From NCBI GenBank assembly GCA_020891255.1, contig BQFW01000001.1, positions 2,294,001 to 2,358,000 of the forward strand: a DNA stretch of 64,000 bases. Direction: 5' to 3'. Every line of letters begins with the position of its first letter. Positions within the stretch are counted from its first letter, which is position 1. The stretch comes from Entomortierella parvispora E1425. Lineage: Eukaryota > Fungi > Mortierellomycota. The notes below the pieces were generated by a model that did no database searches, was not told the origin of the DNA, and was given only the letters and a program-made list of their open reading frames with translations. The position numbers and the translations under genes were made by a program. Positions 1 through 20,695 of this stretch are shown here, one piece after another.

Positions 1-78
1 GCTTTCTCTTCTTTCTTTCTTTCATCCATCCACATTCTCACCTTCTTCCTCCCTCCTGTACATATACATACTCGCAAG

Positions 79-1123
<1,045 letters not shown>

Positions 1124-1575
1124 GCAATGTCGGGAACCATCAAGGAAGGAAAATACAAAACATAATATCAACAAAAACACACGTTTCGTTGCTTTCAGGA
1201 CGGGACGATTTCATTCGCCGTAAATAAACCATGTCATATTAGCAAAACAAAACCCTACATCATGCCTTTGAAGGAGGGGACAGGGGAAGTGCGAGATTCG
1301 TATTGTTGACAGAACTGCACAAGCCTCTAAAACAGTTGAGTTATTTTTTACTCCAAGGGACCGGCGAGTCTCCGATTTGCTCTTTCATTCAGTCCAAAGG
1401 TGGATATGATGAAGGACTCGGAAAATGATATCTTCCACGGCCAAGAATGATAGAAACTGCAAGTTGGACTTTGAGCAAAAAGATCTTTAATAATATACAG
1501 GCGGAAAAAATGCAACAAGGGGGGACGGAATTAATGAAAAAAGGAAAGAATAAACAGAAAGAAACTGGAGTTGTT

Positions 1576-8877: not shown

Positions 8878-11020
8878 CTAAATAACGTAAAACTGGTCGG
8901 CCTCCTTTTCTCTTTTCCGACCACCAAAGCAGGCCCAGCCTGAGATCATCTCGTTCCATTCTTGGATAAGAGACTGCTTGAAAAACAACAAGAAGATCCA
9001 GATACCCGTCGTACTGACCAGACCCTCTGCGATCATCATCAGTATAAAGTTGGGCATGTGGCCACTTGCATACTTATCACCACACTCTTCCTGGCTACCG
9101 CCCGTAAAGATACACAGCTGCCAGGTCGACATCCAGCTCATGTCTGTCTTACTTCCCTCAACCAAATAAAAGGCCCAGTAGACCAGGATGGAACCGGAAA
9201 TGACCAGTGCCAAGACCGCGGCGCGCCACTGGATGCGGATCGCGTTCAACACGTGGCGACGATGAGAGATCCTGGCAGCACGACCCGAGGACAAAGTCGA
9301 GTGAGAAACTGTCTCGGACTTTTCAGACTGAAGAGTGATGCGGATGATGTGAGCGAAGGTAGCGATATGAAGCAGGATGGAAGGAACCATGATCACTCCA
9401 AGGGGAATGAACAGCAGAGCATTCGAAGTATCTTGCGTAGCCATACACCTAAAAAAAATAATGCGAAAAACAAAAAAGATCAGTTTCTAAGGATCAAAAT
9501 CAATGGAAAAAAAAAAGATAGCAGGCAAGACCTTACATGTTCGAGTTGTTCCAACCAATAGATTTGGTAACAACAGCAATTGCGGCAAAGGCTGCGGGAA
9601 TGATCCACCCGATGGTGTGGGACAACCAGGCGCGTCTCGCGAGCCAGCTGGAGTTCCAGACTGTATGCAAATGCAAGTTCACGATGACGAGCGACAGCCA
9701 CGCCGTGGTTGCAATGGCTCCAAAGATAAGCCAGCCTCCCTGCGCCAAGCACAGGTTGTTGTTGTACGATGTCGATGTGACAATGGCCGTGGTAGGGATA
9801 GGCTGATGGGTTGCGCACTGAACACGCTTTGGATCTCCGTAAGAGAGAGCAACAGCAGCACTGAAAATGCAAGTGGAGATAGCAGCAAACAGAATCAAGT
9901 TGCTTGGGTGCTGAAGTTTGTCTGGCAACAGAAGATAGGAGATCACCAGAATCAAGGCCAGACCTGCAGAAATACCCTTGAGAATATCTGTGATAAAGAA
10001 TCCTTTATCCAGGATTCCAGGCTTGTAAAACGCGTCAGTCTGTGGGCAGGGAAGACAGCATCCGCATCCACAGTTGGCATTGTCGGCATTCTGCAGTCCC
10101 TTGGTCGCTTGGAAGACAGTGTCGACGACAAATGGCGAGGGGCACTCAGTCATAGGCTGTGAACAAGTTATGTTGGTGCTTTGAGCTACATTCAATTGAA
10201 GTGCCAAGCAGGGTTGTATTAGCCGCAATGTCATACCCTATAGAGATTGCTCTGAAAAGCCATATATACATACGTGGGATGTAATTGCAAGACGGGTCTG
10301 GCTGGTATGGGAATGGGCCTCCAGGATACGCCCCCGTGCCTGGAATAGGTGTCGAGCAGTCAGGGAGCACCGTCATATTCTGGGGGATTACTCCATGGGA
10401 TTGGAGGAAAGCTACATCAGCTTGGCAGGTCTGGATGGCCGTCTCGCATGTTGATTTGCAGGCAAAAAGGACATTGTAACTGTTGGCTATGGGAAGAGAG
10501 TGTATTCAACAAGCTCGTGTTAGAAGGGGTGCTGGAAATGCTCGGGAATATGATCGATAGCACAACATTGGTTACTCTGTCCAGTCAGTCCAGTCGTGAC
10601 AGGGCGAGGAAAGGCGACCGAGCACCCATAGGCAAGCATGGCAGATTGGCATGGATCGGGCAATGCCATGAGGCTCTCCAGGCCTGCTGCAGCCTCGATC
10701 ATGGTTACGTTTGTACCGTCAGGAATCCAAACGTTGTAATCAATAAAACCTTGGCAATATACTCCAGTGTACGGCACCACTACAAAGAAGAAGGATCCGG
10801 ATTAGAAAAGAGAGCGATAGACAACAGGTATGAACATTAAGGTACCGCCAACAAACAAAAACGGAAGAGATGTCAGATGCGCATCTGCCATGTATCCATA
10901 GAGTAGTATATGGACGATCACGGCGGGCATCAAAACGGAGAGGCGATTGTGAGCCAATGGTGAACGGCTCGACGCGTCCAAGTCCCTGCTGGGGCTCTGA
11001 GCTGGTCTGGACCCAGCCAT
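8878..11020 (-). CDS. Frizzled/Smoothened-like (class F) 7TM receptor with N-terminal cysteine-rich domain; start approximate
   Basis: CRD-like exon VPYTGVYCQG...DPCQSAMLAYGCSVAFP; linker CPSPF...CGCGCCLPCP; TM region with HPSNLILF, CLAQGGWLIFGAIATTAWLSLVIVNLHL, SHTIGWIIP; C-terminal WQLCIFTGGSQEECG...MMIAEGLVSTTGIWIFLLF. This matches Frizzled/Fsl-type architecture. Confidence 0.85.
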
Positions 11021-14856: not shown

Positions 14857-15330
14857 CGACAGCAACATCTTGGCCGCAATGATCGATCGCACCCGAAAAC
14901 AATCTGGTCGATCCCGAATGATACTATGTGGTCGAATACTTCATCCTTATTTCCTTATTCGCAGCGTGTCAAAACGCACCTTTGAACTCTTCCGCGACCG
15001 TTTTGACACTCGTTCCACAAGAATCCAGAAACCTCCAGATATGATCAATGGTTCGTTTTCAAGTTTCTTTGCTTTATGTCATTCCACTTGTCCTGACGTA
15101 TAACAAACGAAGAACTTGGTTATTATTGAAACAAATCCTTGAGCCACCGTGAAAGGTTTGACCAAGCATTTCGACTCGAAGAGGGCCGCCTAAAACAGCA
15201 ACAATCGATGAAATACAAATAAGTGGTTGCAACGCCAAAATGGGCACCGTGGCGAGGTCCATCGGTGCAACAAATGAAGGTCCTACAGCTAATACGTGAT
15301 TTAGCGGATCGACGGAGCCTGCGAGTGATC

Positions 15331-17845
15331 CTATTTAACTGCACAGAAACATCGTGTTAGTTCCAGTCTTGCCATTGTCGTCTCTTCATCGTGTGAGCAA
15401 TTGGTAAAAATGACTTACTTGCTGATGCTGATGAAGTAGAACGGAAACACCGGTGAGAAGGATACATCAGTTGCCATCTTGAGGCTCTCATGGCTTCGTT
15501 CCTACAAGCAATTGGCAAAAATGACTTACGGGGGCTGATGAAGTAGTACGAAAACACCAGTGAGAGAGATACAGGTGACCACATTAGTAGCCATTTAACG
15601 ACTGCCATGGCGTTGTCGTTACGAGCAATTGGTAAAAATGACTTACTCGCTGATGAAGTAGAACGAAGCACCGGTGAGTGAGATACAGGTGGCCCCGTTA
15701 GTAGCCCTCTTGCGACTGCCACGGCTTCATTCTGACAAGCAATTGGTTAAAGTGACTTACAAACTGATGAAGTAGAACGAAAACATCGGTGAGTGAGTTA
15801 TAAGTAACCACATTGGTAGCCTTCTTGCGACTCTCATAGCTTGGTTGTTACAAGCAATTGGTAAATGTGACTTACCAGCTGATGAGGTAGAATGAAAACA
15901 CAGGTGAGGGGGATGGAGGTGACCACATTAGTAGCTATCTCGCGACTACCTTGGCGTTGTCGTAACGAACAACTGGTGAAATGTCTTACCCGCTAATGAA
16001 GTAGAACGAAACATCGGTGAATGAGATATAGGTGACAACATCAGTTGCCATCCTGCGACTGTCATGGCGTTGTCGTAACGAACAATTGGTGAAAGTGACG
16101 TGACTTACGCCCTGATAAGTAGAACGAACACACCGGTGAGAGAGATACAGGTGACCACGTTAGTATCCATCTTTTGGCTGCCATGGCGTTGTCGTTACGA
16201 ACAATTGGCGGAAGTGACTTACTTGCTGATGAAGTAGAACGAAAAACCGAGTGAGAAACCGGCGGACACATTAGTTGCCTTCTTGTGGCTGTCATGGCGT
16301 TGTCGTTACAAGCAATCGGTAAAAATAACTTACATGCTGATGAAGTAGAAGGAAAACACCGGCGAGAGGGATATAGGTTGTCACATCAGTTGCCATATTG
16401 CGATTGATATAGCGTTGTCGTAGAGCAATTGGTAAAAATAACTTACATGCTTATGAAGTAGTACGAAAACACCAGTGAGAGAGATACAGGTGACCACATT
16501 AGTGGCCATTTTACGACTGCCATGACGTTGTCATTACGAGCAATCGGTGAAAGTGTCTTACCCGCTGACGAAGTAAAACGAAAACATCGGTGAGTGAGAA
16601 ATCAACGGACACATTAGTTGCCTTCCTGTGGCTGTCATGGCGTTTTCGTTGCGAACAATGGTAAAAATGACTTACAGGCTGATGAAGTAGAACGAAAACA
16701 CCGGCGAGAGGGATATAGGTTGTCACATCAGTTGCCATATTGCGATTGATATAGCGTTGTCGTAGAGCAATTGGTAAAAATGACTTACATGCTTATGAAG
16801 TAGTACGAAAACACCAGTGAGAGAGATACAGGTGACCACATTAGTAGCCATTTAACGACTGCCATGGCGTTGTCGTTACGAGCAATTGGTAAAAATGACT
16901 TACTCGCTGATGAAGTAGAACGAAAGCACCGGTGAGTGAGATACAGGTGGCCACGTTAGTAGCCCTCTTGCGACTGCCATGGCTTCGTTCTGACAAGCAA
17001 TTGGTGAAAGTGACTTACAAACTGATGAAGTAGAACGAAAACATCGGTGAGTGAGTTATAAGTAACCACATTGGTAGCCCTCTTGCGACTCTCATAGCTT
17101 GGTTGTTACAAGCAATTGGTAAATGTGACTTACCCGCTAATAAAGTAGAGTGAAAATACCGGCGAGTGAGAAACCAGCGAGCACATTAGTTGTCATCTCG
17201 TGGCTGTCTTGACGTTGTCGTTACGAGCAATTGGTAAAAGTGACTTACCAGCTGATTAAGTAGAACGAACACACCGGTGAGATAGATAGAGGTGACCACA
17301 TTAGTAACCATCTTGGCACTCTCATAGCTTCGTCGTTACAAGGGTAGACTTACCGTCTGATGAAACAAATGAAGGAAAGAGAGACAGGGGTAGAATGTAA
17401 GCTTATATCCAGATAGTGCTGTATATTATCTTTACCAAGGCCTACTTCTCTCTGAGTGCACAGATCATTATCAAGGAGATGGTGTTAATCAACCATGTTA
17501 GCGTCAGTTTTGTGTTTTGTCTTCGCTGTCATAGCGACAATGAAAACTGACTCGTCGATTGATATGTCGCGAAAGAATAAAGAGCTATACGGGCTGCGAG
17601 TGCTTTCTCAAAACTGCCATCGTTGAGGAATGCAGCACTTCTGACTTACCCAGTAATCGAGTGGATCGGATAATACCAGACGGGAAAACCTCAGATTGTT
17701 AAATACAAACGTCGCTAAGGCGATAACCGCTGCTCACCAAGACGCCCGAGGTCTTTTTGCTTTGTCATTCTGTTAAAACTTACACAGGGGCAGCGACAGT
17801 GAAGCCTAGAAAGGCAACAAGGACAAGGAGGAACTGGATCTTCAT
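15331..17845 (-). CDS. Micro-exon gene (21 exons) encoding a 43-aa secreted prepropeptide MKIQFLLVLVAFLGFTVAAPVEKRCGFDILGIIKAGCFDPPIK
   Basis: Exons in transcript order: 17845-17784 (signal peptide, ends CCT GT|GTAAGT); 17451-17446 AGAGAA; 17356-54 ACG; 17251-49 CTG; 17136-34 CGG; 17021-19 TTT; 16906-04 CGA; 16791-89 CAT; 16678-76 CCT; 16564-62 CGG; 16449-47 CAT; 16336-34 CAT; 16225-23 CAA; 16111-09 GGC; 15992-90 CGG; 15878-76 CTG; 15763-61 TTT; 15649-47 CGA; 15534-30 CCCCC; 15421-19 CAA; 15338-15331 TTAAATAG. The total is 132 nt (43 codons + TAG) with no internal stop. Every internal exon is flanked by AG and GT. Confidence 0.85.
15339..17359 (-). repeat. Tandem array of ~114-bp units (17 full units plus a partial one); each unit is one spliceosomal intron plus one micro-exon
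   Basis: Minus-strand consensus GTAAGTCATTTTTACCAATTGCTCGTAACGACAACGCCATGGCAGTCGCAAGATGGCTACTAATGTGGTCACCTGTATCTCTCTCACCGGTGTTTTCGTTCTACTTCATCAG-NNN. Period is 105-119 bp. Across the 18 micro-exons, donors are GTAAGT (16) or GTAAGA (2) and acceptors are CAG (14), TAG (2) or AAG (2); a CTAAT/CTGAT branch-like motif occurs in most units. Confidence 0.97.
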
Positions 17846-18737
17846 TTGGGAGTAATGTGGAGAAGATAGAAGGTGAGGGGTGGAGGTAAAGGTGTAAGTC
17901 GAGCGATGGTTCTTGTCTGGCAAGGAAGACTGTGGCTTTTTGAGGAAGGAACCTCTGTTCAAGGGGCGCATCAAGGGGCATTGCTCTCTCCTATCTTTTG
18001 GGTGGATGCAGATTTCAAGAAAGTGGGGCTCTGCCCATTTCGGCAGCAACATTTTTCCAAAAGGAAAAAAAAAAGTTCTCAGCTGCCGGGCTTGGAGTGA
18101 AGACGATGTAGGACGACTGGCAATTGAGGGCGCAGTTGTGTTGTTTCTTCATCGGTCCGCATTGCTACTTTCCGAGATTAGCACTGTCCCTCGAGCTCCT
18201 TTCCCTCTTCTTCAATTGGTCGTCCCCCGCACCAAAAATGATATTTCAGCGGCGATTGTGCCTTGGCCACGACGCCTGCTGGTTGTACCTGGGAGGAAGC
18301 GGGTCTGTATATGTTTCAAACACCAATATTATAGCCCTCCCCCCCCCCCCCAAAATGCTTGCCCACTCAGACCGCTTTTTGAGCTGATAGGACCCACGGT
18401 CTTCCCTCCGCGACAGGCCCCGGAAATTCAGGACCAAGTATCAAGAGCGCAGGGGGAAAAAGGGGCATGATCAACAAGAACGGAGTCCCCTGTTGTCAAG
18501 TAGCAGGTAGGTCCGCTGATCAGTCATCTGAATGAACTTTATGTTTCTTTCGTTCTTTGACTGGGTCATGTTGGGGTATGGAAAAAAACCGAGAACAAAG
18601 CAGCAACCCGCAGGCTTGATGACCCGAGGGATCCACGCGATGATAAGGATAAGCTACAGAAAGAGGATATAAGGTTTCTCTCCTGGAAACTTGAAAACAT
18701 TGCATGATCGGCTTTGATATCCTTAGTTCTATCTTGA

Positions 18738-19511
18738 ATGTCTTTCCTACCACATCGCCTCACCGCTTCCCTGTGGGATTGCCAAAGTTCGATCCAATCT
18801 TGGTGTGGACGCTTGCCGCAAGTTTGTCGATAGCGAGGACTTTTATACCCTCCCTGTTCCGATCGATTCCAACACAGGCGCCAAAGTCGGGGATTCGTTT
18901 GATATCACCGCCTATTTGCAATCCCAATATCCGACCGCGGGATCTGGCCCCTACAAACACCCGACTTTGTCTATCAACCAGAAACTCTCATCCTGGTCCC
19001 TCTCTCTGTTGAGAGAGAGGGTAAATATGAAGATTACGCTCGATTCAACACCAGTGTCGATGCCGCCTTCACCATTCATATCTCTATCTGTGCCTTTAAG
19101 CTCCCCTTTGATCCTGCCACCGAGGAAGCCAGCAGGGCCCAATTCGTTCAACGCGCCAGCGCCTATGGTATCACATCTTTTGATCAGTTCGAGGTCAAGG
19201 GGGAGGCGCGCGAAAAGGTCAAGGAATCGCTCCGTCTCATGCTGGGTGACCTTGGCAGGCTCTATTTGAGGGACCCTAGCGGGCCCTTCTTGTTGGGTCA
19301 GCAGGCCAGTTACGCCGATCTCATCGTCGGTGGATGGCTTCGAATGATGAAGGTCACTCTTCCAGAGAATGAGTGGGAGGAAGTCAGCAGCTGGCATGGA
19401 GGACTCTTTGGACGTTTGTACGATGGTCTGGAGAAGTTTATGGAGGTCAAGTGGGAGGATAGGCCGAGCTGCTGCAATGATCCATGCATCGCCCAAACCA
19501 AAATAAAATGA
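18738..19511 (+). pseudogene. Intronless GST-like gene (UstS-like/GST_N_3 fungal family), frameshifted and apparently with an N-terminal deletion
   Basis: One frame reads IAKVRSNLGVDACRKFVDSEDFYTLPVPIDSNTGAKVGDSFDITAYLQSQYP (GST N-domain TLP...GDSFDI). A different frame continues ILVPLS...YARFNTSVDAAFT...FDPATEE...GPFLLGQQASYADLIVGGWLRMMKVTLPENEWEEVSSWHGGLFGRLYDGLEKFMEVK. No intron signals explain the shift. Confidence 0.75.
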
Positions 19512-19895
19512 TGAGAGCCGTTGCTTCGCCCGTTTTTGTTCAACGACTTCCCCTGCTGAAGGCCATTTTAAAATAAACGAGATCGTGCCGCGATGTTGCA
19601 TTAAAAAACACGGGCTGTGCTCTCGTGTCATTGCACGCGAGTGCTGATTCGCTTGAAGGAGGCTCCGTCTGGTCAATTCATAGACCTTTGTTCCCTTGTT
19701 CTTTGATAGCTGTTGAATGGGTGCGTGCACTCCCTTGATAGCCCTTGAGGAGTGCATCCAGCCAGCTGAACTCGTTGAGGGGTGGATTCGACTGAGGGTA
19801 TGATCGTCGATTCTTAAGGGGTCCATATGTGATTCATTTATATACATCGCTCGGGCTTGGCTTTTTTCGTCACTCTTTCGCCTTTTCTCTCCTTC

Positions 19896-20695
19896 ATGGT
19901 AGACCTGACTGGTAAGTGCCTCTCCTTGAACAACATACACTCTCACCTTTGCTCCTCTCTGTCGTTTCGTTCTTGTATGCCCTTGCCTTGCTTCATAACC
20001 ACCATTCCTTTCAGCCTGTCTCTCTTTTTTTTTTTTGCTATTCTCATGCTTCAATGACCACGTTTCATTTCAACATTGTCTCTCACGCGTCATTTCGACT
20101 GCGCCCGCCAGCTCAGTGTTGACATTGACTCATTTCTCTCTATTCCTTGTATGTACTTTTCATCAAAAATAGTGATTGCCTCGGTCCTGGCCTTAGTCCA
20201 TCAGTCTTTGACATGCATGGCGCACATTGCCGGGGGGTTCATATGGTAAGTTGTAGCTTCTCTTGCGTTCGTGTTTGTTGCCTTGTGAGTGTGTTGACTG
20301 GTCTTCTTTCGTGTGTTCTCACAAGTCTCTTCTCTTCATCTTCTTCTTGAGTACTCTGCAGACCCTCCCTCATCCCGCCTGCCTCTGTTAGGCTGCGCCG
20401 CTTCCTCGTCGTTTCCAGTTTACAAGTTAAGTGTGTGTGTGGGTGTGTCTCTCTCTTGCTCTTCCATCCCAATCTTTCTTTCATCTCTCCATCGGATGCA
20501 GGTCTGGTGGGAGCTTGAAGAGGTTTTTCGTATTTCTGGCCCTGGCAACAAGAGAGGAAACGTGATTTACGGCTTGAAACCCAACTGCCGCCTTCTGAAT
20601 ACAGAACCCAGCTGGTGGACATGGTTTTGTATCCCATTATGGTCATGCAAATGGCTATCGACCCCGTGTGCTCGTCAACACCTTTGCCTTTGGGT
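19896..20695 (+). other. Possible multi-exon hypothetical gene or spliced transcript
   Basis: GTAAGT donors at 19912 and 20246 and AG acceptors at 20171-72 and 20390-91 give an open spliced frame MVDLTVIASVLALVHQSLTCMAHIAGGFIWLRRFLVVSSLQ...; no family recognised. Confidence 0.25.

Follow-up and report, generated by a model that had tools for sequence, protein, structure and literature searches.

Can a protein-coding gene be written with one codon per exon? The question is raised by a locus of the fungus Entomortierella parvispora E1425 (Mortierellomycota), which lies in a 64-kb stretch of DNA that we analysed as a whole (the window, whose positions are used throughout). On the minus strand of this window, which carries all parts of the gene described below, a tandemly repeated array had been read from the DNA letters as a chain of introns separated by exons of 3 nt; we refer to this reading as the original prediction. 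We consider it quite likely that the locus is a real, expressed and unannotated gene of E. parvispora E1425, running from about 17845 to below 15100, in which tandem introns and single-codon exons encode a small secreted peptide. This view draws on the architecture of the DNA, on a spliced RNA that has the expected length and boundaries, and on the way in which the repeat units vary.

The array (15419–17356) holds 18 micro-exons, and the introns between them are 17 tandem copies of a single ~110-nt intron, out of the 21 introns of the whole pre-mRNA. Its donors lie at 17353, 17248, 17133, 17018, 16903, 16788, 16675, 16561, 16446, 16333, 16222, 16108, 15989, 15875, 15760, 15646, 15529 and 15418. 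Every one of these GTAAG donors is preceded by an AG and 3 nt (5 nt in a single case, 15534–15530), and the exons read, in order, ACG, CTG, CGG, TTT, CGA, CAT, CCT, CGG, CAT, CAT, CAA, GGC, CGG, CTG, TTT, CGA, CCCCC and CAA (or CATCAGCAA, see below). A fresh reading of the DNA thus returned both the spacing and the 18 listed triplets exactly as they had been claimed. The donors are GTAAGT in 16 cases and GTAAGA in two, and the acceptors are CAG (14), TAG (2) or AAG (2). With the 6-nt exon that precedes the array, there are 19 internal exons, namely 17 of 3 nt, one of 6 nt and one of 5 nt, although the last of them is probably of 9 rather than 3 nt.

This arrangement stands out from the rest of the window. 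Tandem Repeats Finder delimits a repeat at 15464–17339 with a period of 115 bp, 16.4 copies and 75% matches, and reports an additional higher-order period of 342 bp. A pattern describing the architecture (three GTAAGT donors enclosing two 3-nt exons) matches eight times in the window and never in 100 shuffles that preserve dinucleotide composition. The donor hexamer GTAAGT is rare elsewhere, since 18 of its 37 copies in the 64 kb sit in the array, and the verified introns of a neighbouring gene encoding a GH9 endoglucanase begin with GTAGGT, GTAGGG and GTACAG. Neither a second array nor any further copy of the repeat unit was found within the window.

The original prediction had also placed a signal-peptide exon and a 6-nt exon upstream of the array, and a 43-codon open reading frame (ORF) ending in TAG; in the joined sequence all three are as described. 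Exon 1 (17784–17845, 62 nt) starts with the ATG at 17845, holds 20 and 2/3 codons and ends in phase 2 at a GTAAGT donor at 17783; its 3' end reads ...GTCGCTGCCCCTGT and it encodes the signal peptide MKIQFLLVLVAFLGFTVAAPV. It is followed by intron 1 (17452–17783, 332 nt; GTAAGT ... GCTAAC ... CAG) and by the micro-exon AGAGAA (17446–17451), which is flanked by a GCTAAC branch motif and CAG acceptor on one side and by a GTAGGC donor on the other. This micro-exon contributes the Glu of the tripeptide EKR, as well as the two opening bases of its Lys codon, and its inclusion in the mRNA is not certain. Intron 2 (17357–17445, 89 nt; GTAGGC ... CAG) lies outside the repeat family. At the other end of the array, the last coding intron (15339–15418, 80 nt; GTAAGT ... 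ACTAAC ... CAG) has a 5' half homologous to the array units. The terminal coding exon (15287–15338) begins with TT, which completes an Ile codon, and continues with AAA, the stop codon TAG (15333–15331) and the start of the 3' untranslated region (UTR). An intron in this UTR (15190–15286, 97 nt; GTAGGA ... TTTTAG) begins 44 nt past the stop codon, and the UTR then occupies 15100–15189 and continues beyond 15100.

Is this chain of exons present in RNA? We compared three sequencing runs on positions 15100–18100: a genome run (X1), a second run of the same sample (X2) and a run from another sample and study (X3). The second run is listed as 'DNA?', yet it behaves as RNA-seq, with exon-only coverage, canonical splice joints and 0.32 of the sampled words; searches for RNA runs filtered by kind had missed it. 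Its depth over the locus is confined to 15100–15342 and 17784–17844 and is zero over intron 1 and the whole array. One contig of 318 nt from this run, in minus-strand sense, opens with 23 nt of Illumina adapter, whose orientation is consistent with RNA from the minus strand, and then follows the genome from 17844 to 17784, stopping exactly at the predicted donor. Next come 58 letters that match nothing in the stretch, followed by 15342 to 15286 with one mismatch, by a joint that skips 97 nt with GT..AG ends (CT..AC on the plus strand) and coincides with the UTR intron, and by 15188 to 15100, the record extending ~30 nt further. With the terminal exon predicted to start at 15338, exon 1 and the terminal exon stand 58+4 = 62 nt apart in the RNA, exactly the length predicted for the micro-exons together (6 + 16x3 + 5 + 3), the agreement being in length and not in letters. 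Mature mRNA therefore retains RNA of micro-exon length between exon 1 and the terminal exon, and contains no array sequence.

The same contig bears on the simplest alternative, in which the array leaves the RNA in one piece, as a single large intron or by skipping as a block, and the intervening letters come from elsewhere, such as an assembly chimera or an unrelated short exon. Only the number of the 58 letters is known, and a join of exon 1 to the last exon (whose opening letters would then read TTAAATAG) stays in a readable frame, as this alternative would have it. However, removal as a block predicts 0 nt between the two exons and retention predicts alignment to the array, so that with 62 unaligned nt neither was seen, although the original prediction had named both outcomes as grounds for giving it up and both were looked for. 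Those 62 nt lie between exact exon boundaries and equal the micro-exon sum, and no contiguous piece of the 3-kb stretch matches the 58 letters. A direct join would moreover encode only the signal peptide and two residues, and the internal GT and AG dinucleotides and the AG-free zones described below would not be conserved. We regard block removal as very unlikely.

An error of assembly in the array, or in its number of units, would be a still more distant explanation in a long-read genome. In its favour, the array is a repeat within which short-read contigs break off, the pieces from X1 being only 128–535 nt long. Yet the eight X1 pieces tile 15100–18100 with 0 differences, X3 contains homologous units, and the length of the RNA contig matches the number of exons assembled. 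We give this explanation practically no weight.

If the introns are spliced one by one, selection should leave its mark on the repeat units. We aligned the units with donor and acceptor as anchors and counted substitutions by parsimony on a tree of the units. The 115 columns underwent 1.38 changes on average, and 33 of them underwent none. The donor GTAAG and the acceptor AG did not change in any unit, whereas the two bases preceding each donor changed six times each and rank first and second among all columns, so the original claim of invariant splice dinucleotides around varying triplets holds in the alignment. We estimated at ~1.5e-4 the chance that the two most variable columns would be exactly these two exon bases. 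As far as can be judged from the aligned units, this is the pattern that selection on exons and introns predicts and not that of a neutral satellite, the recent duplications among the units notwithstanding.

The remainder of the unit reads as a well-formed intron. In regular units, a branch motif of the CTRAY type (ACTAAT, ACTAAC or ACTGAT, and ACCAAT in two units) precedes the 3' end by ~49 nt, a pyrimidine-rich tract separates it from the CAG, and the acceptor is the first AG past the branch motif, with an AG-free zone of 51–103 nt. Taken together, the sequence features of the repeat unit are those of an unusually strong intron in which the only freely varying part is a dinucleotide within the 3-nt spacer.

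These data also bear on a different reading of the array, as a non-coding host gene in which the exons do not matter and the functional product, a small nucleolar RNA or another small RNA, lies in the repeated introns. Such a gene would have many introns and tiny exons, and the intron units are indeed ~75% conserved. Nevertheless, a cmscan search of 15000–18200 against Rfam, on both strands and at E<=1, found 0 matches; it is the splice signals that are conserved, the intron interior being the least conserved part and showing no C/D or H/ACA box arrangement; and the mRNA has an ATG-initiated signal-peptide ORF that is kept among paralogues. A host gene for small RNAs seems to us a most improbable account of the locus.

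The exact set of exons in the mRNA probably differs from the one first proposed. The exception to the rule of the first AG is the last array unit, where a 6-nt duplication (CATCAG) places an AG 6 nt upstream of the acceptor chosen in the original prediction. For that acceptor the AG-free zone is only 4 nt, and this is the sole unit in which the acceptor is not the first AG. The RNA contig touches the same point: its piece from the terminal exon reaches beyond the acceptor by 4 nt, where the genome has GCAG, shows one mismatch there and fits GCAA but not CCAA. As a local extension must end on a match, the mRNA there should read GCAA, and not CCAA as the original chain predicts. This is explained if the last array intron ends at the AG that comes first downstream of its branch motif, which gives a 9-nt exon, CATCAGCAA (15427–15419), of which the exon first proposed is only the final 3 nt. 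We think that the last micro-exon is probably this 9-nt form.

With a 9-nt last exon and a total of 62 nt, 6 nt must be absent elsewhere, and the 5-nt exon must be present (modulo 3). On that condition the overhang and the total imply that 6 nt are skipped, in the one contig at hand and with no isoforms seen. Candidates for skipping are two CAT exons with weak AAG acceptors (16791–16789 and 16449–16447), two CGG exons that precede GTAAGA donors, or the AGAGAA exon. A 9-nt last exon with the two weak-site CAT exons skipped would give ...VEKR followed by CGFDLGIKAGCFDPPSAIK, which is a likelier form than the CGFDILGIIKAGCFDPPIK of the full chain, and the 43-residue sequence first proposed is probably not the dominant product. 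The claim of a spliced micro-exon mRNA thus stands in its length and its boundaries, which fit the 62 nt, and has to be amended in its composition, with a last exon that is probably of 9 nt and 6 nt missing elsewhere.

What would such an mRNA encode? Joined in order, the pieces of the full chain give an open frame of 43 codons up to the TAG at 15333–15331, which reads MKIQFLLVLVAFLGFTVAAPV, then EKR, then CGFDILGIIKAGCFDPPIK. The exons are in phase 2, so that each triplet opens with the wobble base of the codon before it, and the coding signature noted in the original prediction is confirmed: this base is C or T in 16 of the 18 exons, and the only two purine-initial triplets each follow an exon ending in AA, where they make Lys (the chance of such a placement is ~1/136). 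The first 21 residues, judged by inspection and not with a predictor, form a signal peptide with MK, a hydrophobic core of 13 residues and TVAAP. There is a single KR site in the 43 residues, that of EKR, given that the exons AGAGAA and ACG are included. The ORF, of ~132 nt, would accordingly specify a signal peptide of 21 residues, a short pro-piece with a Kex2-type EKR at its end and a peptide of 19 residues with two cysteines; the whole of the predicted mature part and the KR are encoded by the array. EKR is probably a Kex2 site, and from the sequence we infer that the peptide is secreted and cleaved; its cysteines probably close a disulfide. It may act as a signal, as an antimicrobial or as an interaction peptide.

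The most serious rival accepts that splicing is real, and regards the array as a selfish or neutral expansion in a small, unimportant or decaying gene for a secreted protein, the inserted residues having no function and the peptide itself not being under selection. Tandem duplication of an intron with 3 nt is neutral with respect to the frame and can spread without selection, the higher-order repeats reveal recent block duplications, and no homologue of the product was found. A neutral array nevertheless predicts that the exon bases vary like an average column, whereas the informative ones are the most variable and the intron signals are frozen, and it leaves aside the fact that the mature peptide, both cysteines and the KR site are all encoded by the array.

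Paralogues and a second sample provide further evidence on both sides. In X1, depth over exon 1 is 3.6 times the baseline, and several contigs match only from ~17846 to 17777 and then diverge. As this span starts at the ATG and stops slightly beyond the first donor, paralogous loci have the signal-peptide exon alone in common. That the ATG-to-donor exon is conserved so precisely recalls families in which the leader is kept and the mature part varies, and speaks against a neutral array. X3, which bears the same species label, is 85–95% identical across the locus (window 15300–17640) and has a homologous array. It lacks the CATCAG duplication, has CCC in place of CCCCC, differs at two of the three bases of the ACG exon and misses one 113-nt unit, its differences by whole units appearing as skips of 113, 695 and 766 nt, while the splice dinucleotides are unchanged in the rows shown. 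X3 could be a diverged strain or a set of paralogues, since its contigs could in part come from paralogues. Its differences fit a minisatellite-like gain and loss of codon units. The C-terminal tail differs between E1425 and X3 by a frameshift, which suggests weak constraint on this part of the peptide and is what a neutral array would allow.

Is the arrangement restricted to one species? We scanned metagenome contigs of the Joint Genome Institute with the architecture pattern and obtained at least 120 loci. Most of those listed (e.g., L005, L011, L021) are (GTAA)n or (GTAAGTAT)n microsatellites and were discarded as spurious; GTAA-type microsatellites are a systematic source of false positives for any scan for AG-NNN-GTAAGT. 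Among the matches listed, three are real analogues, whose architecture is known from DNA alone. The first (L041; Ga0213864_10142092, 1–1209, minus strand) is array over all its 1209 bp, with 10 units of ~129 bp, a perfect TACTAAC and variable triplets. Its unit runs GTAAGT ... GATACTAAC ... AACAG plus a variable triplet, and its phase-2 reading is LGCFWCDLS; its similarity to the intron consensus of E. parvispora is no greater than that of shuffles. The second (L015; WNGF01082377.1, 1–2644, minus strand, 17% GC) has 18 exons of 3 nt in the AG-NNN-GTAAGT arrangement with a period of 88–115. This array lies between an ATG exon and the exons of a protein kinase (Pkinase, E 5.8e-9), and the frame is open from the ATG across the triplets into the kinase; it would be preserved if the array were skipped in full. 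The third (L071; WNGF01149738.1, 1–760, plus strand), from the same metagenome as L015, has at least four 3-nt exons in repeated introns of ~100 bp. Downstream of them follows an exon for the N-terminal part of a kinase, a paralogue of the one in L015, and the Atlas clusters closest to this exon are kinases from Mucoromycota, of which some contain Sel1 repeats.

In L041 and L015, as in E. parvispora, the splice dinucleotides never vary, and the exon columns rank among the most variable ones. These analogous arrays, including those in kinase genes of an AT-rich Mucoromycota-like organism, suggest that the phenomenon is wider than one species. The kinase arrays of L015 and L071 can also be claimed for neutral expansion, as they sit in the N-terminal and probably tolerant part of their genes. 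With all of this taken together, we hold a neutral array in a real but unimportant gene to be unlikely, while conceding it more than any other rival, and we retain the reading of the locus as a gene for a small secreted peptide.

Why, then, has the gene not been annotated? The E1425 line, cured of its endobacterium, was cultured on CMMY medium for 7 days; its DNA was read with Nanopore and HiSeq, one TruSeq RNA library was made from the same culture (2x150, RF strandness, DRA013164), and the annotation was produced by AUGUSTUS, with HISAT-mapped reads serving as hints (PMC8759367). Mapping with HISAT would be unable to place exons of 3 nt. In a collection of 15 billion proteins, an exact look-up of the 43-residue product and of two alternative exon sets returned none, which we attribute to an annotation pipeline that cannot place such exons. 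The original description of the locus as fungal, unannotated and undescribed is borne out by the match of the GH9 gene to E. parvispora, by this absence and by the lack of a precedent in the literature that we found.

The surroundings of the gene agree with this assignment. The exons of the GH9 endoglucanase gene in the window are 100% identical to an E. parvispora protein (P0001), and its relatives at 60–80% identity are all from Mortierellaceae. A gene for a Frizzled/7tm_2-like G protein-coupled receptor (GPCR) lies at 8968–10774 on the minus strand, ~4.5 kb downstream of the peptide gene and on the same strand; its closest representative (P0121) comes from another species of Mortierellaceae. 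For an ORF at 9533–10234, the protein collection has no exact product on record. Directly upstream of the peptide gene, the ORF at 18951–20054 (minus strand, 367 codons) has no Pfam domain and no homologue in 5.8 billion clusters, and is probably not a gene.

Several points weigh against our reading of the locus. All the RNA support comes from one Logan contig of one library, in a run labelled 'DNA?', and its 58 central letters were not displayed, so that the identity and order of the triplets rest on the genome prediction. The 4-nt overhang disagrees with the exon set first proposed, so that the composition and the peptide given here are provisional, and among the allowed exon sets there is one, skipping AGAGAA, in which the Kex2 site is lost. 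The first genomic base of the contig is 17844 (the T of the ATG), beside the adapter, and X2 has no coverage upstream; either the 5' UTR has only a few nt or the contig is truncated. The units are kin through recent block duplications, with subfamilies present, and the column statistics thus overstate their independence. In X3, ordinary exons of 3 nt stand in place of those of 5 and 9 nt, and the tail is the frameshifted one. The orthologous GPCR locus (that of P0121, at 70% identity; GCA_016097885.1, L121), searched with flanks of 10 kb, has no array and no AG-NNN-GTAAGT chain. Lastly, the peptide is a prediction from nucleic acid, and a homology search with the product in the 5.8 billion clusters, at E<=10, gave no match.

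How could such a transcript be processed, and how would the array evolve? We infer that the introns are removed one by one through intron definition. Adjacent 3' and 5' splice sites that are 3 nt apart would not be occupied together, and splicing would then proceed as a ratchet that leaves one codon's worth of RNA at each step. Each phase-2 triplet would give the wobble base, almost always C, of one codon and the first two bases of the next. The array would grow and change by duplication or loss of intron-plus-codon units, as the higher-order repeats show, and by substitution at the two informative exon bases, which are the most variable columns.

A broader proposal, which we put forward tentatively and consider rather doubtful at present, is that the locus belongs to a class of 'codon-cassette' genes of Mucoromycota-type fungi, in which intron-plus-codon minisatellites encode secreted peptides. 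At the present locus, where the exons are in phase 2 and nearly always start with C, gain, loss, shuffling or skipping of units would give a sense codon and never a stop, and unequal crossing-over of the DNA together with regulated skipping in the RNA would diversify the peptide, leaving a conserved leader and a hypervariable mature part. The genes might even pair with neighbouring GPCR genes as ligand–receptor modules.

If our reading is true, this would be the most extreme split gene known to us, with a peptide written at one codon per exon over ~18 consecutive exons of 3 nt, and a fungal spliceosome would be able to handle long chains of adjacent introns whose splice sites nearly touch. How small an exon can be, and in which order introns are removed, could then be tested directly in a culturable fungus. 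Minisatellite dynamics would be tied to protein evolution, one repeat unit gained or lost being one amino acid gained or lost. The locus also points to a blind spot of annotation, in which loci are masked as repeats, aligners cannot place exons of 3 nt, and 15 billion predicted proteins do not include the product.

Which known systems does the locus resemble? That the spliceosome can include an exon of 3 nt is known from single micro-exons in Drosophila homothorax (PMC7392893), in RPS24 (PMC11162997) and among plant micro-exons (PMC8831610). Those exons are isolated between long unrelated introns in large genes, whereas the present locus chains ~18 of them to make a whole peptide. Recursive splicing at ratchet points, as in Drosophila Ubx, involves a strong 3' site abutting a strong 5' site, with an exon of zero length and introns of tens of kilobases. 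It shares with our locus a (Y)nCAG followed by GTAAGT, which would demand the stepwise removal of consecutive intron segments. At the locus, however, there are always 3 nt (once 5, once 6 or 9) between AG and GT, which are kept as coding sequence, and the introns are of ~110 nt.

At the level of the product, the fungal Kex2-processed precursors (KEPs, alpha-factor-like pheromones and the precursors of dikaritins, which are ribosomally synthesised and post-translationally modified peptides) contain several KR-separated repeats in ordinary exons. The product predicted for the locus would share with them a signal peptide, a pro-piece ending in KR and a short peptide, given that AGAGAA and ACG are included, but it has a single KR, and the repetition at the locus is in the introns and not in the peptide. 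As to the origin of the units, the model of Rogers is said to propose that tandem duplication of a segment bounded by AG and GT yields a new functional intron. Introner-like elements of fungi are near-identical spliceosomal introns dispersed in unrelated genes (PMC4457414). The locus likewise has many near-identical spliceosomal introns in one genome; its copies differ in lying head-to-tail in a single gene, each carrying a codon, with the unit present only in the array within the window.

The closest known kind is that of the micro-exon genes (MEGs) of Schistosoma and other flatworms, reportedly described by Berriman and colleagues in 2009 and by DeMarco and colleagues in 2010, with exons that are said to measure 6–36 nt. 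Inspection of the locus finds the same architecture, with mostly very short symmetric internal exons between a conventional first and a conventional last exon, and with the secretion signal in exon 1. In both, symmetric exons could be skipped with the frame kept, the products are small and secreted (at the locus, as predicted), and the genes form multigene families that standard predictors miss. The locus departs from MEGs in that its exons are of 3 nt for 16–17 in a row, its introns are tandem copies forming a minisatellite, and its host is a fungus; its product, a peptide of ~19 residues with a Kex2-type site, has no sequence homology to theirs. A search of the literature on tandem introns, 3-nt exons and micro-exons in Mortierella and other fungi found no chains of 3-nt exons and no tandem intron arrays that encode a peptide. 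As far as we found, the layout is without known precedent, and we class the locus with the micro-exon genes, as a new variant that takes their idea to an extreme.

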